Source: Utricularia gibba (lineage: Eukaryota > Plantae > Magnoliophyta). From it: a stretch of 64,000 nt of DNA. Made by a program: the position numbers and the translations under genes. The stretch is taken from NCBI GenBank assembly GCA_002189035.1, contig NEEC01000009.1:744001-808000 (forward strand). Reading direction: 5' to 3'. The notes below the pieces were generated by a model, which was given only the letters and a program-made list of their open reading frames with translations, was not told the DNA's origin and did no database searches. Below are positions 8,732 through 54,800 of this stretch, piece by piece. Within the stretch, counting starts at the first letter, position 1. Every line of letters begins with the position of its first letter.

Positions 8732-10485
8732 ATGTCTTCTGCTGTGAACTACATGATGGCGACTTCGTTTTTTGCGGATCCAAAATTCGCTTGGGTGGAA
8801 GTGGATACCGGTTATCGAGAACGCATCTTCGGTTACAGCCCTTAAGCTGCAGGAAGTCCCCTAGCTACTCGTCACAAAACCGGCGGCTGGTTTGTTGCTG
8901 CACGAAATCTGGGTCTGCTGAGAACGGCGTCGCTGCAGCAGTTGATACTCCGGTGAGGATAGTGGCGGTTGTCGGTGGGGGAAGCGTGAGTCCGCTCAAG
9001 AGTGCGCCTTGGTATGAAGTCATGGTCCATACCGTAAGTAAAGAAGCTCATCTTCTTCCTAATCAATTTCTAGTTTTGAGATATTTTATAGGAGGATCAG
9101 GTGTTCGATGAATTTCCTCTGAAGATTTCCCCGCTTTGCCCAGCTTTTGAACTGGATTCGTGTTTTGAAATCCAGGCAACAAGACTGAAATGGGTTGATG
9201 AAGGGTATGAGATGCTGGTGTTCAAGGACAACTTCTATCAGGACGACAATCAAATTGTGCGCCTTAGAGAGGCCGTCAGCTCTGCTGACATTTTGATGAT
9301 CGTTGCTGTTACGGATCCAGAATCTGCCAAATGGATTCGGGCTAATCATCACAATGTCTCGAATGTGGTAGCTTTTGACTCCTCGCCGATGCTGGAAAAC
9401 AAATTAGGAGGATCCCTTGTCCAAACAACGGCATCCGGTAGTATACTCAGTAAATTGCCATTGCCACAGTCTACGAAGATGAAGGAATCTGAGGAAGTTG
9501 TTCAGTCTCTAAACGACGCTTGGGCCAGACACAACTCCGATGATATACGGTTCTGTTTGTTGGTCATAATAAATGCTTACATCAGACCAGTTCCTGTCTT
9601 GCAGAATCTAAGAGCAAAAGGTTTCTCCACCTTGAGCTGCATGGCCAAAAACTGTGGACGCCAGATCCTGAACTGCCTGTTGGATCCCAAGTGTAGGAAA
9701 GCTCTTCAATGCTTGAACAACTGCAGTCCTGTGGATCAAGTATGCAACTATCGGTGCATAGCTTCGTACGAAAGCCCGCAGCTGGAAGAATTCTCCTTGT
9801 GTGTATTGCAAAAGAACAACTGTCTCGAACTGGATGCACAGATTCCTGATACACCTCGTGTCGCCCAATGAAACATTTCCAAGGCCAGGTTTTGGATCAC
9901 GAAACTGCAGAGGATCTGTTTGTGGGTTGGCTGGGGCGCTTAGACTGGAGCTGGCGTGTTGTCGCCGGGCAGAACCCAGCTTACGATCAGTTTCCATGCC
10001 AATACCAGCTTTTCTACAGGGGGAAAGCAAAGGGATCATTTTGGTATGAGCCTGTTTTCCAGGTGAGAACACTAGAGGGTGATCTGGTGTGGAGACGAAG
10101 AAAGTACCGTGTCAAGAGAGGAAACACCCCAGGAACGTTTCACTTCAGTGTGCTAGATAACGGAGTAGTTTCAAATGAGTTTTGGACCATTGTAGATGTC
10201 TGTGATGATCTCGGCTGGGGCTTATTCCATTACCACGGTGCAGCTCGGGTTGCCGGGCAGTCGTATACAGGTGCTGTTCTCGTCAGCCCTGATGGATCAT
10301 TCCCGGGAGAGGGCCAGATGCAGAGACTGACAGCTGCATTGGATAGAAGCGGCATCAAGAGCTGGGAACTGTTTAATGTTGACAACTCTTGTTGCGCGAA
10401 CCCGCCTTTAGGTCTGCCTGAGGGTTCAGGGCTGCACTGCAAGATCAATGTTGTGGGTACGGAGACTAACTTGGCTCAGATGTAA
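8732..10485 (+). CDS. VDR: Violaxanthin de-epoxidase-related protein (Cys-rich domain plus lipocalin-like domain)
   Basis: RIVAVVGGGSVSPLKSAPWYEVMVHT, Cys-rich CLLDPKCRKALQCLNNCSPVDQVCNYRCIASYES, AGQNPAYDQFPCQYQLFY. One intron. Two apparent 1-nt deletions (T run 8768-8773, C run 9864-9866) split the ORF. Confidence 0.9.
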
Positions 10486-25600: not shown

Positions 25601-28600
25601 TAAATTACAGGTCTGCAGCCTTTATACACCAAAGATACTGGAAGCGAGGTTATGGAAACTTCAAATGTTCGCAAGTGCCCATGAAAAAGGCTAAGTAGCA
25701 TCCATACCCCAGTTAAAAAATGGTCAGTTAGTTTCTTTTTCGTCCAGAAAACTATTATCTGCTTCATGGAGCGTCAAATGGGATTTCCATGTAGCTTAAG
25801 CTGCTCTCTATACACAGCATGTGAAGCATGTTAACGAATAGGGTTTTTCAATCCACAAAAGGCGTTTTCACCTCTGGAGAGTTAAGAAAATCAGGGCAAT
25901 CATTGATCTATAAGTTGCTCAACTCAACCCCGTTCATAGATCCAACAGCACTATAATATCTCTCCAGAAAGCCATGTTGAGCATGTTAACGAACAGGGTT
26001 TTTCAATCCACAAAAGGAGTGCCACCTCACTGGAGAGTTAAGAAACTTTCGACAATCATTGATCTAAGTTTGCCTAATTCATCCCCGTTCTTCAGGTCCC
26101 ACAGCATTATAATATCTATCCAGAAAATTCTGAAAGATAAATCGAATGATTGAAAGTTCACTTGTACCCATATACAGATCAAGACACTACCATCGTACAA
26201 ATAAGAGTCAATGCAATGTTGTATACAAAGACATGAAAAGCCATTTTTGTAATAAAGACCAGGAAGCATAAAACTCACTCGATCAATGACTCTTCGATCC
26301 CAGGCATCTGCCCATGCTACAGCTGCAGTCCAATATGCAGAATGACTGCTGTCGTCATCAGGTTCAAAAGACGTACCATGTTTATCCAGATTCGTCCAGG
26401 GCCCCAAAACAACACCATCCACATCACCACACGTGATGTTGATATTCATTTGTGGGTGCAAAAGATGTAGAACCAACTCTTTCCCCACTTCTGCATTAGA
26501 TGTTCTATTGAGCTCTGCATTCCGTGTCACTAGTGCACTGAAGAAGCTGCTGCAAGGATATATCCTCTAGTGGAAGAAAACAGCACTGTTAGCTCAAAGG
26601 TGTTCTTTTAGAAGCATATATTTTACATTTCCAGAACGTATGTGATGCAGCTCAGTACCTCTATCAATGCCATCGTATCCAATATTTTCAATTCATGTGG
26701 TTCAAGGCATACATATCTTGACATCCCTTCAGCAATGAACTTCCGAAGTGATCTTCTTAATGTGCCAAAAACCAGGTTTTTAAGGACAATTTCAACATCT
26801 TCCCCAAGCTTTTGCAATGTAGTCACAGCAAGCCCAAACTCACCCTATACAATGTGGAATATATCAACCAGAAAATTAAAGCACGCATTCTTATCACATT
26901 TAAAACTAACCAACCTTCAGGAAAAGATCATATGCAATTGCTCTTCCCACAGTCCGAATATCACTAAAAGTATCGTGTGTTTCTGTGTCTGGTAATGCAT
27001 TGTGTAAACGATGAAGATGCAGTGTAAGAACAGCCAATGGAAGCCTACCGGAAAGCAATGCATCTTTAACAACAGTATTAAGGTCCATATAACTTAAATC
27101 CCAACGTGCTATCATGTCCTTCGGATTCTCCACTTTTACAGTCCTTTCACCAATGCCATTCCCTTCAGCAAGTACGACTGCATGGTCAAAACTCAGCAAA
27201 TCCGTGCACTCGGAACCATCTGTTCCTGAAGATACGAAAGCACGTTTGTCACCAGTTTGAAGTTCTGTTCCAACTGCAGGCCCTCCAGTAAGAGCTGAAC
27301 CATCCAAAAACAAGTCACTTCCTGCAACAATTGGGTTTTCCAAACCACCCTCAGGCAAATCCGCAGGAGCCAGGTTTGGCAAACCTATATTGTCCATCTA
27401 AAGAACAAAGGAATTTAGTCATATATGCTAGGTTGCTTAATTTAAGTAGGTGTGTTGAACAGCCTACCAGTATCAGGCCAAGCTTTCCATGTCTATCATT
27501 AAGCTTCCTGCACAAACAGCGAATGACAACTAAAAGCTTAGCCATATCCCAAAGGTTGTTTGAACCTCCTGATTTACCATATTCCTTGTCAACCAACTCA
27601 TATGGCTGAGAAATACTATTGTAACTCCAAGCATCCCATGACCTTAGAGCAACATTGGTAAGATGAAACATGCCATATTCATGAATGGCCGTAGTTGCAT
27701 AGCTGGTGGCTAATGCTAGAAGCCTGTTGACATTTACTGCACTCTAGTTATTATACATCAGCAAAATCTCAGAAAAGAGAAAAAAAAAAGACAGAAAAAG
27801 TGCCAAGATACTTAAGCACATACGATGTTATCATTATCAGAATGATCAGAATTGCACTGACATGAAAACAATAAACTATGGCTCTCTAAGACAAGCGTTT
27901 AGATGATTCTTGAAAGATCAGGTTTGAAAAAACTGAATACTCGACTCTAAATCCAATCCTAATCCATATAGATATTAAGATGTATAATCACCTGAAGAAT
28001 AAGAATTCAAAACATCGTCATCAATGCATTTTTTATTGACCCACACAATAGTAATTAAAACAAACATATGCTAATCATAACGCTCAAAAGAAGTATATGA
28101 ACGATAATAAGAGCATCCTCTAGACATTAAATATGCATCAACTACAAAAACGATGTGTTCCATACCTTGATGCGGAAAAAACCTCACTGTCATTCCTTAC
28201 ATGGTAAAGCATCAAATATACTGTTGTAAACAGCAATTGTAAAACACCCTCCACTGCTAAATTGACCTCCATGAGCATTTCTAGAGAACTGTTAATTAAA
28301 ACAAATGGCAAGTTAGATTATGAGCAAAGGAAAAAGAAAAAAAACAAACAGATGAATACAGATTTGGGTAAAGGAATGTGAATCATACTTCTGAATTTGG
28401 TCAAACTCCAGGTAATTTAGAGCCAACTGAAGGTGTCTGATCCGAGTGGCCCCCAAATTCCATCCTGAAAGCATTACAATCACTTCTTGTCTCTATTAAA
28501 TGTGTACAGATTTGTACACGAAAGAGAAAAAGTGCATGGCATGGTTAGAGGAAAGTAAATGCATTCACCATGGAAAACAAGAATGTATTATCACATTAAA

Positions 28601-40641: not shown

Positions 40642-41408
40642 CTAGAAATCTCCGGGCCAATGAATCGCGGCGAACTCGCTCATTTCCGGCCATAATTCGG
40701 CCGGCAGCGGAGACGACGCCGTGTAATCAGTAACCGATGGGTAGAACATCATCGTTTCATCCAGCGTACTCCACGCGTTGTACTGATTGTCGTATTCGGA
40801 GTAGCATCCCTGAACCTGAGGGTGCGTATCAACTGTCGGAGGCGGAGGATTGGATGATCGGTGTTGATCGGGGGGAGGATTCGAGGGTTCTCGATTCGCG
40901 AGCTTCACGTTTTCAGGGAAATTGAGTTTCGCTTTGTTCCCCGAAACCTAAGCGCCTCCATGTCGTAGGCCATCGCCGCCGCCTCCGCCGTATCGAAAGT
41001 CCCTAGCCACACTCTCGCCGCCTTAACGGGATCTCTGATCTCCGCAGCCCATTTCCCCCAGGGCCGTTGCCTCACTCCCCTGTACTTCCTAGGCGACGAA
41101 TCCCGATTCAGCGTCACCACGGTGCTGTATGCATACACCGCCGGTCCTTTCACTATCGTCACAATACTCCCCGATTGCGAGCAGACTCCCCCGCCTCCAC
41201 CTACTTCTCCGGCGTTTGTCAAAGTGGACATCATTGTTGACACCCCCATCTCTCTGCTGTAACCAGGTAACATTGAGTAATTACCATTCTCGCTGTGAAA
41301 GAATTGTCTGTGGGTTGTTTCGATTTCGATTCCTCCTCCCCATGAATGGAACTGGAAAGCTTCTGGTGAACTGTTCTCCACTTTGAAGTCACGCATATGC
41401 AGAGTCAT
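40642..41408 (-). CDS. AP2/ERF transcription factor, probably group X (ABR1/ERF110-like)
   Basis: AP2 domain [42 protein letters not shown]; N-terminal [13 protein letters not shown] resembles the group X MSAMVSAL motif. One extra G at 40939-40942 gives [15 protein letters not shown] and joins the 40642-40908 ORF. TATATATA upstream near 41500; start codon 41408 or 41396. Confidence 0.85.
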
Positions 41409-42782
41409 TGAATCCAGAGGTGAGACTCCAGAAAAGCGAGATTCTTCTGGTGAGTCAAAGCAGAGAGGAGATGAGTGATCGTTGAAGCCAGCCAAGTCTA
41501 TATATATACACGCACACACAGCTGGGTATGAACCCATCGGAGTCGCAGGGAATGTTCGGGGGAGGTGGTTGCCTTTGACAATTTCATGGAAATGGGAGAC
41601 GTTGGCCTTTTTAAAAATGACAAAAAAAAAAAAAAACCAATCCAATACGACGTCGCTCAGTCAGCCATAGCCGGTGCCCAAACCGATAGAAGTAACCACT
41701 GCTACTGTAAGGGGGAGACCTTGTAATTTTCATCTCATTTTATTTAACTTAATAACTAAATAGAGAAAACAAACATATTGAATATTTTTATTCTATTTTT
41801 AAACGAAAGTCAAACCAAAAAAATAAAAAAATTGTATAGATATATCAAAATTTCACGTTAGTTAAGGGAAATAAAATTTACGAAACATTTGGATTAGAAT
41901 TTGATATCTCCATTTCGATATATTATTTTATATTTTTATTTGTAATTCCTTATTTTTTATTTATATTAAAAACCAATGAAATTATAATTATGTTTTTCGT
42001 ATAAATAAAACATTTTTATTCTTTATCCATATATTACTATTAAAATATTTTCACTATGTTCAAATCTAGTAAATAAATAAATCCTTAAAAAAATCTAAAA
42101 AAAGCAGGTGACAGGTGTAGTCAACGCCGATGTCAATCGGCGTGCGGGGTGGGTGTTCACACCTCCCTGCGAATGGACGGAATCCTTTGTTCCCTTTGTG
42201 CCGACGAAATATTATTGTTTAAGCTCTTTTTTATCCATGTGATGATTTAATAATATAATAATATAATAAAAAAGAATTTCCCTTTCTTCTCCATCCAGCA
42301 AAAGATAAGGGCATCTGGCAACCAAATATATATTCCTTTTCACTGAAAAGGATTCACATGCCTGAAAATAATTAATACTTTTTGTTTTTAAGTGACTTAG
42401 TTGTCTTTAATAGACAGTAATTGCAATGATTTGAATAAAACGGTAAATAAAATTGCTTGTTTTAATATAACAAGGGAATTATTTCAACACACGGGAGTGT
42501 TCGTTGCCTTTTTCGCAGGTGGGGACACTGGCTGCCGCAGATTCATTCAACGCAGGGGCCGGGGCCAGGGCCAGGGGAGTTGGTTAGAACATTCTTTTTA
42601 ACACGATCCCTATAGTAAGTTAGTTTTAAATGATACAACAAAGTTTGGATTCCACGCGCTTTGCTAAATGGAAGAGCAGGATCACTCACAGTTTAGAAGC
42701 ACAAATAGGCATCTCCCAAATGGATTGATTCCACAAGCAGGCTGCGGCGCGGTGCTGCTATTCGTGTCTGGTCTTGGAGTCA

Positions 42783-45700
42783 TCAGCTCCCACAGGCCAG
42801 ACACTCGTCACGGTTCTCTAGAGAGCATGCTATCTGTGCCATCTTCTTCAACTCATCCTCGCTCTCGGCTTCTCTCAGGTTCTCTCGCAGGCCCTGCAAC
42901 CAGGCCAGCCATTCATTCATCATTAGGAATGAATGAGATGGGGAATGTGCAGAAGCTGATAAACACCTACATTTTGTTTTAGCATGGTGGTGTCCACTGT
43001 GAACTTGACGGCGTCCGCTGCAGCGCGTGTTCGTAGATAGTACATTCCTGTTTTCAAGCCCTTCCGTGCGCAAAAACACAGCCATCAGTAACAGAAAAGG
43101 GAAGCAGTGCGGACATTTCAGATGATCGATAGGACTCGGTTAAGAGGTGCAGCAACAATTCAGCCAGGCTTACATACCTTGGACCATGCGTAGAAGTGCA
43201 AGGAGGTTAGCTTTCCGGTTGTGGGTTCATCCATATGAATGTTGAGGCTCTGGCTCTGGTCTATGTAGCTGCCCCGATCGGCCGCCATGTCCACCAGCGC
43301 CCTTTGCTTGATCTCCCAAACAGTCCTGGATACACAGAATTGAATGAGTGATAACCCCAAGATGCACATGGCGCCAGCACGCTTTCAGAAACCATACTTG
43401 TAAATTGCCTTTAGCTCTGAAGGAATCTCGGGAATGTTTTGCACGGAACCATTCTGGTAAATTATGCGGTTCTTGAGAACTGGAGACCAGAGTCCCAGCT
43501 CTGTCAAATCATGTAGGAGATGCTTATTCACCACTACGAACTCCCCACTACAAACAAAAAAATAAATAAAAGATCAAATTTAGAATGGAGCATACGCAGA
43601 AGAAAAATAAAGCAAAACAAATGAGTACTCAAGGAAATCATACCTTAGAACCCTGCGGTTATATATATTAGATGTATACGGCTCAAAGCATTCATTGTTC
43701 CCAAGAATCTGGCTTGTGGAAGCAGTTGGCATTGGGGACACCAGAAGTGAATTCCTCACTCCATTGCTTGCAATGTCGGCTCTAAGAGTAGGCCAATCCC
43801 ACCTTTCAGAAGGTTTTACCCCCCACATATCGGGCTGAAGAATACCCTAAACGAGTGAAAGAAGCAATGTCAATGCATGGTAGAGTCTAACATTTCCATA
43901 AAAGGAAAAATCGCAAAGGCTCTAAAAGCTACCTTGCTGACTGGACTGCCAGTGTATGTTTCATATGGACCTTGAATTTTAGCAAGATCACAAGATGCTC
44001 TTAAAGCGTGGTAGTAAATTGTCTCAAAAATATCCTTGTTGAGCTGCTGGGCCTGCATCATTTCAATAACACGTTAAAGAAACGCAGGCAATACAAGCGA
44101 ACATGAAAGAATGAATAAATGAAAAAGAATTTATACCTCTGGAGATTCAAAGGGCATGCCAAGTAAAATAAAAGTATCTGCCAACCCTTGCACACCAATT
44201 CCGATTGGCCTGTGGCGCATGTTAGAACGCCTAGCAGTTTCAACAGGGTAATAGTTGGTATCTATTATCTTGTTGAGGTTTCTAGTAACAATCGAAGTCA
44301 CCTGCACTGACAAGATGGGGTGAGAATGACAACTACAAGCATCATCAAATGCTACATATCCGGCACAAGACAAGGGAAGAAAATGAGCAAGACCTCTGCC
44401 AATTTTTTAAAGTCAAAATATCTGCTCTTGAAACCTAGACTCCCCACAGGCTTGGCAGGCTGCGAATCTGGAAGCATTCCCTGCTTGAAAGGGAATTAAA
44501 AGGACATTAGCACATTTGATACCATAATTGCAAATCCGTGTCATTTATAAGCTAAAGTACCTGTTCTCTAACACATCGAGGCAGGGCAATGGATGCAAGA
44601 TTACACACTGCTGTTTCCGTGGGACTTGAATACTCGATAATTTCAGTACACAAGTTGGAAGATTTAATGGTGCCAAGATTCTGCTGGTTGCTTTTTCTAT
44701 TGCAAGCATCCTGAAATTCATGTACATCATGTCACATCACCATAATAGATGATACATGTCAAATAGAGATCATGGCAGGATGACTACCTTGTACAACATG
44801 TACGGATTTCCTGTTTCAATCTGGGATTTCAATATCTCGGACCAAAGATCCCGCGCCTGAACAACCTTCTTTGCTTTCCCCTGATGCAAACCCAAAATCA
44901 CATGAAGCAACAATTCATTGAATCATGCCTTACAAAGATGACGCCTTTACCTCTGCTTCATATCGCGTGTACAATGCTTCAAACTCCTCACCCCAACAAT
45001 CAGCTAACCCTGGAGACTCATTTGGACAAAAAAGCGCCCACTTTTTATGTGCACGAACTCTTTCCATGAACAAATCTGGGATCCAAAGGCCCAAAAATAA
45101 ATCTCTTGCACGATGCTCTTCCTGAAAGTAGAAAAGAGAATGCCTCCGTCATGTGTCAAGATGTGCTCAAAACACAGACTTTACTTAAGCTGAGGACCGA
45201 TAAAGAAAGATTCACCATGTAATAATGACTAACAGCTATACCTTCCCGTGATTTTTTCTCAAGTCCAGAAACTCGAAGATATCTGCGTGCCATGGCTCCA
45301 AGTAAACAGCAAAAGCACCTGGTACATCGGCAAATTTTATTAGCTGCGCATTTGAGCCCTGCGTTTATGTACCAGAGTATTCACCTTTCCTCTTTCCACC
45401 TCCTTGATCCACATACCGGGCAGTGTCATTGAAAACTCTAAGCATAGGAATAATTCCATTCGATGTCCCATTTGTACCACGTATATAGCTTCCTGTGGCA
45501 CGGATGTTGTGGATCGAGAGACCGATGCCACCCGCTGATTTGCTAATCACAGCACATTCCTTCAGGGTATCATAAATGCCCTCAATACTATCTTCCTTCA
45601 TGCACACCAAGAAGCAGCTGCTCAACTGCATGTGATACAAGGAAAACCGATCATACACATATCTCTATCTGCCTAGTAAGAATTCTTTAGCATACTTGTG

Positions 45701-46597
45701 GCCTTGGTGTTCCAGCATTGAAAAGTGTGGGAGAAGCATGGGTAAACCATTGCTGAGACAACAGATGGTATGTATGAACAGCGGATTCAATATCATCCTT
45801 GTGGATGCCAACCGCAACCCTCATCAGCATATGTTGAGGTCTTTCAACAACCTGTCCGTTGATCTTTGAAAGGTAGGACTTTTCCAGAGTCTTGAAACCA
45901 AAGTAGTCATACCCAAAATCTCTGTCGTATATGATTTCACTATCAAGTCGACCAGAATTCTGTAGAGAATTTAAAAAAAAAAAAAAAAAGTGGGGGCAAT
46001 GCTCAGGTCAGGTTTGCTGAGCACAGTTACATGAGGCTGGACAAGGTGTGAGTATCGAGTACCTTCATGATCACATCATACACATCATCTGCAATCAAGG
46101 ACGCTTTGAGTCCTGACCTCTCATTAACATGGTTGTACATGTCCTTAATCCTTCAAGCGCATTCAAGAGCAGTTTATACGAAAAACCACAAATTTTGACG
46201 GATCCATAAAAACCGAACGCAAAAATGAATTCTTACGTTTCTGAAAACGATTTCTTGGTATTTTTATGCAGATTGGATACAGCAATCCTTGCAGCCAACT
46301 GAAATACAGTACCAAGAAAACGAGCACAGTCAGAAAACGAAAATCAGAATCAATTAAGACAAAACTCACCGACGCATAATCAGGATGATTGGCGGTCATG
46401 GCAGCAGCCGTCTCAGCAGCTAATTCATCAAGTTGGCTTGTAGTCACCCCTTTATAGACCCCTGCACAGACTTTCTGCGACACCAAAACAGGGTCACAGT
46501 GCTCGGTGCTGAGACCGTAACTCAATTTCTTGAGCCTCGCAGTGATCTTGTCGAAATGAACAGCCTCATACCGCCCATCCCTCTTAACCACGTACAT
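42783..46597 (-). CDS. RNR1: Ribonucleoside-diphosphate reductase large subunit, left copy (intact at the only site found to differ between copies)
   Basis: [12 protein letters not shown]-cone start, [15 protein letters not shown] catalytic motif, [31 protein letters not shown]-terminal ECLACGS*. Has six C at 43819-43824, keeping MWGVKP in frame. Confidence 0.96.
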
Positions 46598-46705
46598 CAT
46601 GTCCAGATCTCGCTCACAAATTTTCTCACACAAAGTGTTTGGAACCTTCCACGACCACGACAACCGAACCAAGACCTTATAGAACTTTTCCCTCTTAAAT
46701 TTGGG

Positions 46706-46713
46706 ATTCCCGC
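46706..46713 (+). promoter_or_regulatory. E2F-type element ATTCCCGC upstream of left RNR1 (mirror copy at 46902-46909 upstream of right RNR1)
   Basis: Matches the plant E2F consensus WTTSSCSS, about 110 bp from each ATG. Plant RNR genes are established E2F targets. Confidence 0.55.
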
Positions 46714-47017
46714 GCTTGATATGGGGTCGGCGGTTGGGGGAGGAGGTGGGGGGTCGGACTAGAGCAAAACCTTAGCCGGGAGACTATGAAAAGTCCAATA
46801 TACCCCTCGAAGAAGGTTGGACTTTTCATAGTCTCCCGGCTAAGGTTTTGCTCTAGTCCGACCCCCACCTCCTCCCCCAACCGCCGACCCCCATATCAAG
46901 CGCGGGAATCCCAAATTTAAGAGGGAAAAGTTCTATAAGGTCTTGGTTCGGTTGTCGTGGTCGTGGAAGGTTCCAAACACTTTGTGTGAGAAAATTTGTG
47001 AGCGAGATCTGGACATG

Positions 47018-50000
47018 ATGTACGTGGTTAAGAGGGATGGGCGGTATGAGGCTGTTCATTTCGACAAGATCACTGCGAGGCTCAAGAAATTGAGTTACGG
47101 TCTCAGCACCGAGCACTGTGACCCTGTTTTGGTGTCGCAGAAAGTCTGTGCAGGGGTCTATAAAGGGGTGACTACAAGCCAACTTGATGAATTAGCTGCT
47201 GAGACGGCTGCTGCCATGACCGCCAATCATCCTGATTATGCGTCGGTGAGTTTTGTCTTAATTGATTCTGATTTTCGTTTTCTGACTGTGCTCGTTTTCT
47301 TGGTACTGTATTTCAGTTGGCTGCAAGGATTGCTGTATCCAATCTGCATAAAAATACCAAGAAATCGTTTTCAGAAACGTAAGAATTCATTTTTGCGTTC
47401 GGTTTTTATGGATCCGTCAAAATTTGTGGTTTTTCGTATAAACTGCTCTTGAATGCGCTTGAAGGATTAAGGACATGTACAACCATGTTAATGAGAGGTC
47501 AGGACTCAAAGCGTCCTTGATTGCAGATGATGTGTATGATGTGATCATGAAGGTACTCGATACTCACACCTTGTCCAGCCTCATGTAACTGTGCTCAGCA
47601 AACCTGACCTGAGCATTGCCCCCACTTTTTTTTTTTTTTTTTAAATTCTCTACAGAATTCTGGTCGACTTGATAGTGAAATCATATACGACAGAGATTTT
47701 GGGTATGACTACTTTGGTTTCAAGACTCTGGAAAAGTCCTACCTTTCAAAGATCAACGGACAGGTTGTTGAAAGACCTCAACATATGCTGATGAGGGTTG
47801 CGGTTGGCATCCACAAGGATGATATTGAATCCGCTGTTCATACATACCATCTGTTGTCTCAGCAATGGTTTACCCATGCTTCTCCCACACTTTTCAATGC
47901 TGGAACACCAAGGCCACAAGTATGCTAAAGAATTCTTACTAGGCAGATAGAGATATGTGTATGATCGGTTTTCCTTGTATCACATGCAGTTGAGCAGCTG
48001 CTTCTTGGTGTGCATGAAGGAAGATAGTATTGAGGGCATTTATGATACCCTGAAGGAATGTGCTGTGATTAGCAAATCAGCGGGTGGCATCGGTCTCTCG
48101 ATCCACAACATCCGTGCCACAGGAAGCTATATACGTGGTACAAATGGGACATCGAATGGAATTATTCCTATGCTTAGAGTTTTCAATGACACTGCCCGGT
48201 ATGTGGATCAAGGAGGTGGAAAGAGGAAAGGTGAATACTCTGGTACATAAACGCAGGGCTCAAATGCGCAGCTAATAAAATTTGCCGATGTACCAGGTGC
48301 TTTTGCTGTTTACTTGGAGCCATGGCACGCAGATATCTTCGAGTTTCTGGACTTGAGAAAAAATCACGGGAAGGTATAGCTGTTAGTCATTATTACATGG
48401 TGAATCTTTCTTTATCGGTCCTCAGCTTAAGTAAAGTCTGTGTTTTGAGCACATCTTGACACATGACGGAGGCATTCTCTTTTCTACTTTCAGGAAGAGC
48501 ATCGTGCAAGAGATTTATTTTTGGGCCTTTGGATCCCAGATTTGTTCATGGAAAGAGTTCGTGCACATAAAAAGTGGGCGCTTTTTTGTCCAAATGAGTC
48601 TCCAGGGTTAGCTGATTGTTGGGGTGAGGAGTTTGAAGCATTGTACACGCGATATGAAGCAGAGGTAAAGGCGTCATCTTTGTAAGGCATGATTCAATGA
48701 ATTGTTGCTTCATGTGATTTTGGGTTTGCATCAGGGGAAAGCAAAGAAGGTTGTTCAGGCGCGGGATCTTTGGTCCGAGATATTGAAATCCCAGATTGAA
48801 ACAGGAAATCCGTACATGTTGTACAAGGTAGTCATCCTGCCATGATCTCTATTTGACATGTATCATCTATTATGGTGATGTGACATGATGTACATGAATT
48901 TCAGGATGCTTGCAATAGAAAAAGCAACCAGCAGAATCTTGGCACCATTAAATCTTCCAACTTGTGTACTGAAATTATCGAGTATTCAAGTCCCACGGAA
49001 ACAGCAGTGTGTAATCTTGCATCCATTGCCCTGCCTCGATGTGTTAGAGAACAGGTACTTTAGCTTATAAATGACACGGATTTGCAATTATGGTATCAAA
49101 TGTGCTAATGTCCTTTTAATTCCCTTTCAAGCAGGGAATGCTTCCAGATTCGCAGCCTGCCAAGCCTGTGGGGAGTCTAGGTTTCAAGAGCAGATATTTT
49201 GACTTTAAAAAATTGGCAGAGGTCTTGCTCATTTTCTTCCCTTGTCTTGTGCCGGATATGTAGCATTTGATGATGCTTGTAGTTGTCATTCTCACCCCAT
49301 CTTGTCAGTGCAGGTGACTTCGATTGTTACTAGAAACCTCAACAAGATAATAGATACCAACTATTACCCTGTTGAAACTGCTAGGCGTTCTAACATGCGC
49401 CACAGGCCAATCGGAATTGGTGTGCAAGGGTTGGCAGATACTTTTATTTTACTTGGCATGCCCTTTGAATCTCCAGAGGTATAAATTCTTTTTCATTTAT
49501 TCATTCTTTCATGTTCGCTTGTATTGCCTGCGTTTCTTTAACGTGTTATTGAAATGATGCAGGCCCAGCAGCTCAACAAGGATATTTTTGAGACAATTTA
49601 CTACCACGCTTTAAGAGCATCTTGTGATCTTGCTAAAATTCAAGGTCCATATGAAACATACACTGGCAGTCCAGTCAGCAAGGTAGCTTTTAGAGCCTTT
49701 GCGATTTTTCCTTTTATGGAAATGTTAGACTCTACCATGCATTGACATTGCTTCTTTCACTCGTTTAGGGTATTCTTCAGCCCGATATGTGGGGGTAAAA
49801 CCTTCTGAAAGGTGGGATTGGCCTACTCTTAGAGCCGACATTGCAAGCAATGGAGTGAGGAATTCACTTCTGGTGTCCCCAATGCCAACTGCTTCCACAA
49901 GCCAGATTCTTGGGAACAATGAATGCTTTGAGCCGTATACATCTAATATATATAACCGCAGGGTTCTAAGGTATGATTTCCTTGAGTACTCATTTGTTTT

Positions 50001-50831
50001 GCTTTATTTTTCTTCTGCGTATGCTCCATTCTAAATTTGATCTTTTATTTATTTTTTTGTTTGTAGTGGGGAGTTCGTAGTGGTGAATAAGCATCTCCTA
50101 CATGATTTGACAGAGCTGGGACTCTGGTCTCCAGTTCTCAAGAACCGCATAATTTACCAGAATGGTTCCGTGCAAAACATTCCCGAGATTCCTTCAGAGC
50201 TAAAGGCAATTTACAAGTATGGTTTCTGAAAGCGTGCTGGCGCCATGTGCATCTTGGGGTTATCACTCATTCAATTCTGTGTATCCAGGACTGTTTGGGA
50301 GATCAAGCAAAGGGCGCTGGTGGACATGGCGGCCGATCGGGGCAGCTACATAGACCAGAGCCAGAGCCTCAACATTCATATGGATGAACCCACAACCGGA
50401 AAGCTAACCTCCTTGCACTTCTACGCATGGTCCAAGGTATGTAAGCCTGGCTGAATTGTTGCTGCACCTCTTAACCGAGTCCTATCGATCATCTGAAATG
50501 TCCGCACTGCTTCCCTTTTCTGTTACTGATGGCTGTGTTTTTGCGCACGGAAGGGCTTGAAAACAGGAATGTACTATCTACGAACACGCGCTGCAGCGGA
50601 CGCCGTCAAGTTCACAGTGGACACCACCATGCTAAAACAAAATGTAGGTGTTTATCAGCTTCTGCACATTCCCCATCTCATTCATTCCTAATGATGAATG
50701 AATGGCTGGCCTGGTTGCAGGGCCTGCGAGAGAACCTGAGAGAAGCCGAGAGCGAGGATGAGTTGAAGAAGATGGCACAGATAGCATGCTCTCTAGAGAA
50801 CCGTGACGAGTGTCTGGCCTGTGGGAGCTGA
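47018..50831 (+). CDS. RNR1: Ribonucleoside-diphosphate reductase large subunit, right copy (apparent 1-nt deletion at 49791-49795)
   Basis: Mirror image of the left copy with the same motifs. Five G instead of six at 49791-49795 shifts the frame at DMWGVKP. Confidence 0.93.
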
Positions 50832-51890
50832 TGACTCCAAGACCAGACACGAATAGCAGCACCGCGCCGCAGCCTGCTTGTGGAATCAATCCATTTGGGA
50901 GATGCCTATTTGTGCTTCTAAACTGTGAGTGATCCTGCTCTTCCATTTAGCAAAGCGCGTGGAATCCAAACTTTGTTGTATCATTTAAAACTAACTTACT
51001 ATAGGGATCGTGTTAAAAAGAATGTTCTCATCAATAGAACTTAATTCCCTTGTGTTGAATGAATCAACAGCAGTCGGAGTTTCCACCTGGGAAAATGCCT
51101 CTCTTTGTGATGTCTCATATTGAGGAAGAATGGTGATTTAAAAAAGTGGTCATTGTCATCTCACTGTGATAAAAGTGATCACCTAACATGAAAAAAAAAT
51201 GTTAGTACGTGAGAGAATATTTTTCTAAATAACCCTAAATAAGGATTAAACGAATCATGTATATTGAAAATGATAAAATTAAATAGAATGATTACATAAA
51301 TATTATATGATGTTTTTTTCTCATACATGATTGAACATCTTTGATAATGATTTCAAAATTAAACATGTTTGAAATGAGGTAAAATAAATATAGATTACCT
51401 ATTGTTAATTCAATAATAATTTGGTAGTTTAAACATATAATATTATATAATACAAGCGTAAATTGTTACATCTTCTCGCGGAGTGTTGTCACCACCAACA
51501 ACTCCCTAACTTGCTCATTATGTTTGTTTTAATCATCATTTAATACTAATTTAATTTTTTATAATATAAGTATATGTTTCTTTAATCTGTAGATATAAAT
51601 GGAACACAATTGACTTTTAAAATATATACTTGATTAAAAATTATTTAAATGAAGTAACATTTAAATTTCAGTTCTCAGTAAACAATACTCTTTAAACCTT
51701 AATTTACATATTGAATAAGAAATTTAATTTTTCATTCTAGACATCATCATCACAGATCAAAGCATACTCAGACATCTTCCTGTCTTCCATTGAACATAAT
51801 TCTATACTTAAACCTAACTATTTGCAGATAATGAAAGAATAATAATGTTGAATAAAAAAAAAAGGAATGAATGGAAGGCAATGTTTGTTT

Positions 51891-54800
51891 CTAGGCAGAA
51901 GAAGTATAGTCGTCGTCACAGTTGAGACCGCAGACTTCGAGCACGGGCCCTTGTCTGGACACAAACGGGTCGACCCGGACCCAGACCAGGGTCAGAATGG
52001 ATGCCAGCAGAACAGACCAGATGAGGAGGACGGTGGGAACCCTCTCCTGCTTCCCGGTCAATCCCTTGAGGAAGGGATAGAGGTGCATGATGACCCAGAT
52101 GGCGAAGAATAGCCTGCCGAAGAGGGGGCCCCACGAGTCGTACCCGTTGTTGATCGCGTCGGCGGCGCCCACGACGACTCCGACGATGTTGAGGATCAGG
52201 AGGGTGGTGGGCGGGATCAGCAGGGTGGTCCATTTGAAGACGTACAGCTCCGAGAACTCTCCGTCGTCTCCGGATTTTGCGGTCACCGTGAAATTGGTGT
52301 TCACGCCGGCCAGGACCTTGAGGAGGCCTTGGAACAGGGCGAACAGGTGGGAGGAGACCCCTCCGATGACCCAAAACTGCTCGTTTCTCCACCAGTCGTC
52401 GAGGCCGACGCCGCCCCATTGCATTTCGAGTATGCTTGTCGCAGCAATGGAGATGAAAAGCGCCATGAATATGATGCTGGCAGCGTTGCTGATCTGCAAG
52501 AATGTTGCATGTCTGAAGATGCGCAAAAATGTGGATAAAATATGCTGGCTTCTGCGACACGTACCTCAGGTACAATGAACTTTCCGGTGAGAAGGCAGAT
52601 AGCCGGCAGCGTGCAGTATACCAGCAATGGAAGTGAAGTCCATGGATACACAACTGAGTTTATGTATGAGAATCGCTCCAACCATTTCAATCCTCCACCA
52701 TATCCGTACCAAATTGGGCAGTGCCGACTCAGAAAAATCTCCACTGATCCAAGAGCCCACCTAAGCACCTGGTGAAGACGATCAGACAGATTGATGGGAG
52801 CAGACCCTTTAAACGCAGGCCGCTTGGGCATGCAGTAAATAGAGCGCCATCCATGGCAGTGCATCTTGAAGCCTGTCAAGATATCTTCTGTCACCGATCC
52901 GTATATCCACCCCACCTGGTCAGCTTATTTCTGAATTAGAACAACACAAGAAACATGTGGATTGTGTAAGCTTAAGGTGATGATGAGGTTACCTCCTTTC
53001 CCCACTCCGTCTTATCTTCATAGCAACAGCTGATGACATGGAGAGCTTCCATCAAGCGTGCTGTGCTACCCAAACTCGAAGGAACTCCACCATTGGGCAG
53101 CAGTGTTGAAGCCACGAAAGAGGGAGATTGCCCAAACTTCTTCTCGAGTCTCCCTTGAGAGAGATGATCAGCCACAGTTTTCGGCTCTGTGAGCAAACAA
53201 AATCATTTTGCAGTTGAGTCCCAAGAGACTTGTCTCTTCTCTGCTTCTCTTTCTTTAGCATACTGCAAAATGAGAATGTTTTGTACCTTCAAGACGTTGT
53301 TCAATAGCTTCAAGGGCATGAATTTGCTTCGAGGCTTCTCTGTTCTTTAGTTTCTTATTTTCTTTCTTCTCTTTGCATTTCTTGCTTCTCCTAGAACGGA
53401 GACAGCAGCAACACCACTTGGGCCAGCAATTGCAGGTCTTACCAGGCTGTTTCTTCTTAGGAGGTGCATCGTTCCCGTAAAGTGCCTGCCTTCGGAAGAC
53501 GCATCCAGTCCCAACATAAATAGGTCCTTGAAGACCATCTAAACCTTTCATGTTGATCTGCATAAATTACAGAGATTCGTAGGCCACAATTTTTCATGGT
53601 ACTAGAAAACTGAGTAAGTGAAAGATGGGTTGTCAGAGGCATACATCGAAGAACACAACATTGCGATTGGAATATCTATCATGACGATCAATCCCATCAA
53701 ATCTTTGAGGAAACTGCACATAACACACTTTCTTCCCCACAGTAGGATCCATCATGAAGCACATGGCTTCTCTGAGAGCTTGGCTGTTGTTTATGTAGTG
53801 ATCACAGTCGACGTTTAGAATATAGGGAGCATTGGATAGAGATGCTGATACACGGATCTGAATATGCAGAAAGAAAATGAGAGTCACTAAGGTGGTAATA
53901 CGTTAAGAGCAAAACATCTTATGCCATTATCTGTACTCACCAGAGCATTCATTGCCCCAGCTTTCTTATGATGCTCAAAGCTAGGCCTTTTTTCACGGGA
54001 AACGTACACCAAGCGAGGCAGCATACCTTGATCCTCATCATTCCCGATTACCTTCAAAAAAACCATGACACTTGTTTGCTATTTCTATATACATTTGCAG
54101 TACATATAGTTCGCAGAATGAAAAGACTAACCTGTATCATGCTGGGATGGTCCCGGACATTGTTGGCCGGCCAGGTTGTGCCATCCCGCAATGTCCAGCC
54201 GCCCTCCGGAACCTTTTGTGATGTAGCTACCAATTTGTTGATATGAACTTTGAGCTCATCATATTCTCTCTGCACAGCATCAACAAAAATATTTGAGTCC
54301 AATGTGTTAAAATTATTGCCAGAGCTCAGCATCAGCAAAATATAAAGACCTTCAGAGCACGCCTCTCTCTCACAAATTCAGGATGAACTTTGTTTTTAAG
54401 ATAATCCATCTTCTGGCCAAAATACCACTCCGGAGCACGTGGTTCAATGTTAAACTTCTTGCAAAAGGGAACCCATCTTTTAGCAAATACTGATGTCTCG
54501 GAAAGAGCTTCAAACGTAAGCATGGATCCACCATCATCCGAGACATAGCAAGATACTTTGTCAACTGGATAATCCACAGCAAGAATGGAAAGTACAGTGT
54601 TGGCTGTAATCAATGGAGGCTCCTTCATCGGATCAACCGTGCTTACAAATACATCAATATCTGCCAACTCCGAGGGCTGCCCTTCTCGCTCGTATCTAGA
54701 AAATCAGAAATTGCCTAAGTCAGCACTTGCACCTATCCGAAAAGCCATGTTCATAATATAATCTACAGATACCTGAAAGATAGCCTGTCAAGGTATGTTT

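Follow-up and report, generated by a model that had tools for sequence, protein, structure and literature searches.

The 64,000-nt stretch of Utricularia gibba DNA analysed here (assembly GCA_002189035.1, contig NEEC01000009.1, positions 744,001 to 808,000; called the window, with all coordinates counted from its first letter) contains two copies of a predicted RNR1 gene, encoding the large subunit of ribonucleotide reductase. They are arranged head to head as the arms of a palindrome of ~8.4 kb, which lies 42 kb and 13 kb away from the window ends and turns around an 18-nt centre. Two inverted RNR1 copies with differing unique flanks are very likely real. Overall, we lean towards a real inverted duplication that is probably old and homogenised and whose centre is as assembled.

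RNR1 genes in mirror-image arms

Extended base by base from the centre and aligned globally, the arms proved to be mirror images of 4213 nt (left) and 4212 nt (right) around an asymmetric spacer. A repeat search reported two abutting inverted pairs that form one palindrome, and blastn of the window halves against each other returned the arm pair as its sole match (99.88% identity over 4220 columns). Self-comparison of the 64-kb window gave no further inverted or direct repeat of ≥80 nt, which rules out a chance origin of the mirror match. The parts of the palindrome are as follows.

Left arm: 42586-46798, minus strand, complete RNR1 copy A (repeat search, extension and alignment).
Spacer: 46799-46816, no strand, 18-nt asymmetric palindrome centre, TATACCCCTCGAAGAAGG.
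Right arm: 46817-51028, plus strand, RNR1 copy B, frameshifted in the assembly.
Palindromic intergenic region: 46601-47014, no strand, 414 bp, with two E2F-like ATTCCCGC sites (motif scan).

The centroid structure of a 140-nt stretch across the spacer is a hairpin whose loop measures 18 nt, and the stretch has a minimum free energy of -77.5 kcal/mol (z -21). An origin as a transposon or foldback element was rejected: the arms equal one transcription unit, and no extra copies, terminal repeats or duplicated target site are present.

Each arm spans from 198 nt 5' of the ATG at its inner end to 203 nt beyond the stop codon at its outer end. Copy A (coding sequence 42783-46600, minus strand) has 16 introns of 66-120 nt and an intact 816-aa open reading frame (ORF), and copy B (47015-50831, plus strand) is the same except that its G-run at 49791-49795 is one base short. 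The intron map was drawn from spliced contigs of run X11 for 15 GT..AG introns and from the reading frame for the sixteenth. Run X11 is listed as 'DNA?', but no RNR1 intron appears in its contigs over 42620-46542, which have each one spliced out at CT..AC (GT..AG on the minus strand), so that the run is really RNA. One spliced RNA contig extends to 42620, which puts the outer end of the arm near the end of the transcript.

Pfam placed an ATP-cone domain in exon 1 (PF03477, E 1.6e-11), which the homologues found carry too, and the RNR barrel on four exons (PF02867, E 3e-29 to 1.5e-8, profile positions 1-466); on the mirror exons it returned the ATP-cone and Ribonuc_red_lgC. The spliced translation of copy A contains the active-site motif SSNLCTEI (NLCTE) and ends in ...ECLACGS with the CxxC shuttle cysteines, its ORF being uninterrupted to that point. 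With all three features of the family found, the genes in the arms are identified by sequence as class I ribonucleotide reductase large subunit (RNR1/R1) genes. The gene model and the Pfam matches thus agree with a first-pass annotation of this DNA, which had placed an entire RNR1 gene (promoter, introns and ~200 bp past the stop) in each arm. That annotation also had the lengths of the arms (4213/4212 nt) and the 18-nt asymmetric spacer right, as repeat search, extension and full alignment all showed, and it was mistaken in reporting a single difference between the arms.

The alignment contains no substitutions and three differences, each a 1-nt change of length in a run of C or G.

Arm difference 1: C6 at 43819-43824 versus G5 at 49791-49795, in a coding exon (alignment).
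Arm difference 2: G4 at 46723-46726 versus C5 at 46888-46892, in the G-rich upstream region (alignment).
Arm difference 3: G6 at 46748-46753 versus C5 at 46862-46866, in the G-rich upstream region (alignment).

The run at 43819-43824 (minus strand; G6 in the sense of the gene) keeps the frame, and the mirror run at 49791-49795, in a conserved exon, leads to a premature stop. Breaks of the same kind were found in two other genes of the window. In the ERF gene to the left of the palindrome, a 1-nt frameshift lies inside the AP2 domain near 40938 (within 40930-40945), where the frames split after ...EALRFRG; one base is apparently missing there from a G4/A2 run, truncating ERF. A VDE-lipocalin gene (9101-10485, plus strand) consists of two overlapping ORFs whose matches to the Pfam profile follow on from each other (positions 2-70 and 95-242). 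Its break falls at a C3 run near 9865, where GTCGCCCAATGAAA with one extra C would read ...VAPMKHF..., and is likely to be another 1-nt homopolymer deletion. Because equal 1-nt homopolymer frameshifts break the ERF and VDE-like genes, the differences between the arms are assembly noise: all three are errors in homopolymers that a long-read consensus contains, and the arms are identical within assembly error. The frameshift of copy B is most likely such an error and not biological, and the 816-aa large subunit encoded by the two copies is probably the same. The systematic homopolymer deletions of this assembly, which break RNR1 copy B, ERF and the VDE-like gene, are also relevant to its annotation.

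The start codons of the two genes are 414 bp apart, and the motif scan found an E2F-like site in each arm, at 46706-46713 and at 46902-46909, placed 113 nt 5' of the respective ATG. Plant RNR genes are driven by E2F sites. Of words sampled from 41500-47200, 43-46% occurred in RNA runs. This proportion approximates the exonic share and indicates that RNR1 sequence is transcribed, from copies that the reads do not tell apart. In contigs of runs X1, X7 and X8, sequence that fits the last 70 coding nt of RNR1 (42783-42852) with 3 mismatches then diverges (TTTAATCATTCTACATAATTG...), and at least one further RNR1 paralogue must therefore lie elsewhere in the genome, which makes every contig of the arms break at 42852; the 3' flank of this paralogue was absent from the window in a sequence search. 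A homologue search with the exon-1 ORF returned distant plants only, the best full-coverage match (L001) having 71% DNA identity, and the exact products of the exon-1 ORF, the last-exon ORF and a 241-aa ORF are not on record in public assemblies.

Outer junctions and diverged arm edges

Outside the arms, each side of the palindrome runs into a different gene.

ERF/AP2 gene: 40645-41660, minus strand, left unique neighbour (Pfam AP2).
CESA gene, 3' exons: 51894-54499, minus strand, right unique neighbour (Pfam Cellulose_synt).

Both outer junctions were recovered in contigs of X1 and X7, which are low-depth DNA runs of 2013 from different samples of the same study, sequenced by another technology than that of the assembly. 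At the left junction, an X1 contig covers 42566-42852 with 0 mismatches, comprising 20 nt of flank plus arm sequence. At the right junction, an X7 contig of 383 nt joins 116 nt to 42586-42852, and a 30-nt consensus of these 116 nt is the exact reverse complement of 51029-51058. These two contigs thus show the 3' end of RNR1 attached to both flanks in independent DNA, over the 267 nt per copy that are verified in this way, as both contigs end at 42852, where the RNR1 paralogue shares words.

A short mirror homology continues beyond the arms on both sides.

Edge homology, left: 42510-42558, plus strand, 38/49 identical to its partner at 51047-51095.
Edge homology, right: 51047-51095, minus strand, partner of 42510-42558.

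This homology of 49 bp (78% identity) keeps the order of the arms (colinear) and is separated from their ends by 21 and 12 nt, and the six bases at each arm boundary are 4/6 alike (TTGGTT vs TTGATG). Its local score of 27 was reached by none of 5000 shuffles (maximum 17) and none of 3000 real 150-nt pieces of the window (maximum 16). Between the left edge homology and the arm, 42559-42579 is a GC-rich microsatellite-like stretch (GGGGCC/AGGGCC units), and on the right the 13 nt in its place are AT-rich and unrelated. In a search of the flanks by tblastx and blastn for a larger ancient duplication, no similarity was found past the 49-bp edge homology; the statement of the first-pass annotation that both sides enter unique genes (ERF and CESA) was borne out by this comparison of the flanks and by Pfam.

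Because 11 mismatches in 49 nt adjoin 0 in 4213 nt, one mutation rate for edges and arms is excluded, and a sequencing artefact is excluded for the edges, since no artefact yields diverged mirror homology outside the arms. Near-identity of inverted arms over kilobases, as expected of a gene-converted palindrome, is found together with an edge homology such as a duplication older than the identity of its arms would leave. The simplest reading is that an inverted duplication of ~8.6 kb would be old, with its interior homogenised by gene conversion and its edges eroding. This apparent age had been missed by the first-pass annotation: the duplication appears to be old and homogenised, not simply new.

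A relative at the same locus is represented by run X8, which carries it at ~97% identity, with RNR1 as a single unbroken contig of 3.2 kb. The word depth of this contig is 90 versus 19-31 for contigs of the left flank, to be read cautiously because word depth is not copy number. These values are compatible with several RNR1 copies in X8 that are uniform within that genome and differ by 3% from ours, as in concerted evolution.

A palindrome that is real but young would have arisen by one recent fold-back, through a hairpin-capped break or replication template switch in the region upstream of RNR1, and conversion would not have acted on it for long. On this reading, a short diverged inverted repeat was present beforehand, mediated the outer junction and survives as the 49-bp edge homology. 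The zero substitutions over 4.2 kb agree with a recent event, as do the native upstream sequence in the spacer, which is expected at a turn-around, and a 2-nt TT overlap after an AAG slip that we read at the centre. However, the edge homology is colinear and extends up to the boundary, as at the edge of a conversion tract and not at an abrupt junction, and a junction mediated by a repeat should fall inside that repeat, not 12-21 nt off. RNR1 is, in addition, apparently multi-copy and internally uniform in the 97% relative. We consider a young fold-back unlikely.

Still less probable, and close to refuted, is a pure assembly artefact, in which the genome has a single RNR1 at this place and the consensus took in a long read that was a palindromic chimera, owing to a missed adapter, a strand switch or amplification of the DNA. 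Palindromic chimeric reads are a known class, produced by whole-genome amplification and missed adapters (PMC6218980), and the RNR1 locus shares with them an exact mirror, a tiny centre and a long-read assembly with homopolymer errors. Differences in homopolymers only are those of a noisy long-read assembly, and the centre is without a match in other data. Against this, a fold-back chimera re-enters its own flank, and a plain one is unlikely because the flanks here differ. The left and right junctions both occur in the independent 2013 contigs, by another technology; the structure is not terminal but interior to its contig, with >12 kb on either side; its spacer is native and not adapter-like; and the diverged homology beyond the arms is not producible by sequencing.

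The palindrome centre

Several observations weigh against the favoured reading, a real, probably old and homogenised duplication with its centre as assembled. All 31-mers of 46783-46846 are specific to the assembled junction, and when four of them were sampled and searched against public runs, no run was listed. The four same-strain DNA runs of 2013 (X1, X2, X7 and X9) had no contig over ~45963-46850, and X1 had none beyond 45786, so that the inner ~1 kb of the arms, which holds RNR1 exons 1-4, the promoter and the centre, is missing, while the outer 3.2 kb is covered without mismatch. Word shares from the run index agree with this hole over the inner arms, and it persisted in all four runs when contig placement was restricted to 45700-46850, with one fitting place for each contig. 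Run X1 also contains a contig of 235 nt (depth 2.3) that reads from 45579 to 45786 and then into the reverse complement of 45280-45254 (= plus 48335-48361), passing through a 3-nt GAT overlap at the joint. In X8, a contig of depth 11 follows the arm from 46742, takes in the first 14 nt of the spacer up to 46812 and continues into 779 nt of unrelated sequence. The word depth of X1 is 2-4.7 over the arms versus 2.7-3.6 in the flank, which is not clearly doubled and is a weak point, at a coverage of 2-4x with depth truncated at 2 that fits one copy or two alike. Finally, the identity of the arms could have been raised in part by polishing with multiply mapping reads.

The X8 contig bears on the origin of the spacer. 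Its 779-nt upstream continuation was absent from the window in a sequence search, and metagenome scans for the arm-plus-spacer word and for this continuation gave 0 hits. Because the contig leaves the spacer after 46812, at least one RNR1 copy of the relative has no palindrome centre at that place, and because 14 nt of the 18-nt spacer recur in it as a continuation of the RNR1 upstream region, the spacer is native and no adapter, in agreement with the earlier claim that it is not a SMRTbell adapter. By our own reading, the native continuation (GTT...) and the start of the right arm (TTGGA...) overlap by TT, after a 3-nt AAG slip, and this 2-nt microhomology resembles what a fold-back or a deletion would leave at its junction.

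The absent junction words, the empty inner ~1 kb in all four 2013 runs, the X1 joint and the departure of the X8 contig after 46812 would all be explained if the two inverted copies are real and the centre differs from the assembly, either through a longer unique spacer, like the one in the contig of the relative, or through a polymorphic or unstable centre with centre-deleted derivatives in some plants or libraries. The assembled 18-bp centre would in that case be one variant among others or an error of the consensus. For the X1 joint 45786/48335, with its 3-nt microhomology, this would mean an asymmetric centre deletion of 2548 bp (45787-48334); a fold-back library chimera would look the same, and the two cannot be told apart. 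Centre deletion is the classical resolution product of long palindromes. At a depth of 2.3, however, the joint could be a duplicated library chimera, X8 is another genotype (~97%), and holes in Logan contigs prove nothing, by the resource's own caveat. Moreover, overlap assemblers are unable to skip a unique spacer between inverted arms, as arms in reverse complement give no dovetail overlap that would do so, and the structure of 8.4 kb is short enough for ordinary long reads to span it singly. The last two points favour the centre as assembled, and a different centre seems to us rather improbable. Of the chromosomal RNR1 palindrome proposed by the first-pass annotation, the two copies and both outer junctions stand, and the 18-bp centre occurs in no independent read listed.

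Related systems and a model of origin and maintenance

Long, perfect palindromes whose spacers are very short count as textbook examples of fragile sites, and to our knowledge few natural ones persist in eukaryotic chromosomes. A literature search for an RNR1 palindrome in plants found none. Among known structures, the RNR1 locus comes closest to palindromes that carry genes and whose arms gene conversion keeps identical. Palindromes maintained by such arm-to-arm conversion occur on primate Y and X chromosomes (human, ape, macaque; PMC8981503) and on the W chromosome of willow, where the spacers of W.P1 measure 2.6-3.6 kb (PMC7023750). Like these, the RNR1 locus has gene-bearing inverted arms that are >99.9% identical, unique flanks, and an identity best explained by intrachromosomal conversion, the trace of which would be the sharp drop from 100% to ~78% identity at the arm edges. 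Sex-chromosome palindromes have arms of tens to hundreds of kb and kb-sized spacers, lie in non-recombining regions and carry genes for sex or reproduction, whereas the RNR1 locus has 4.2-kb arms, an 18-bp spacer, a single housekeeping gene and no sign of sex linkage.

Fold-back inverted duplications include the Tetrahymena rDNA palindrome, which has a short non-palindromic centre, origin-dependent inverted-repeat amplification (ODIRA) in yeast, and breakage-fusion-bridge products. They share with the RNR1 locus head-to-head copies and a short, asymmetric, native centre, and a turn-around at microhomology is plausible in both. In contrast to these systems, which are usually terminal, extrachromosomal or amplifying, the RNR1 locus is interstitial, with a clean second outer junction and diverged edges that imply age. 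A third comparison is with the long palindromes and quasi-palindromes studied experimentally in yeast as inverted Alu repeats (Alu-IRs), in which a spacer of ≥9 bp lowers fragility by ~80% and abolishes fork pausing (PMC8053094). Both have perfect arms, a short spacer and divergent transcription, and both could fold into a hairpin or cruciform. Because breakage in yeast drops sharply at such spacers, the 18-bp spacer of the RNR1 locus need not be lethal (PMC8053094). The locus is past the 9-bp transition, but its arms are >10x longer than those tested, and stability in a plant is an extrapolation.

The duplication may have originated by a fold-back or template switch in the region upstream of RNR1, or alternatively as an inverted duplication from which a larger spacer was later deleted; either route would leave an asymmetric centre made up of 18 native nt. 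Intrachromosomal gene conversion from arm to arm, which we infer from the pattern at the edges, would keep the inner 4.2 kb identical, while the outermost ~90 bp of the duplicated segment would have drifted to ~78% identity. The 18-bp centre may make the palindrome viable, though its arms are far longer than those studied in yeast. Since the head-to-head genes would be transcribed divergently and outward, hairpin RNA would not be expected. With both copies expressed, the identical genes would share a mirror-symmetric promoter region of 414 bp with E2F-like sites and might double the S-phase output of RNR1, which would amount to the doubled dosage under identical regulation that the first-pass annotation proposed.

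Taken to its full extent, this model describes an old, homogenised palindrome of 8.4 kb with an 18-bp centre, stably inherited and carrying two working copies of an essential S-phase gene behind a mirror-symmetric promoter. We hold this full version only tentatively, as a possibility clearly less probable than the favoured reading itself. If it is true, the X1 joint 45786/48335 and the absent inner arms would be direct traces of occasional instability by centre deletion, and the locus would be a natural plant model for the tolerance and repair of long palindromes. Confirmation of the centre would mean that a long palindrome with a tiny spacer can persist in a plant over an extended period. Away from any sex chromosome, the locus would further exemplify, at the compact scale of a gene, concerted evolution driven by conversion between arms. 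It would also allow a bidirectional promoter of full symmetry to be tested in nature, on a replication gene that is sensitive to dosage.

Elsewhere in the window, direct tandem copies of ~153 bp with 83% identity lie at 25818-25970 and 25973-26126.

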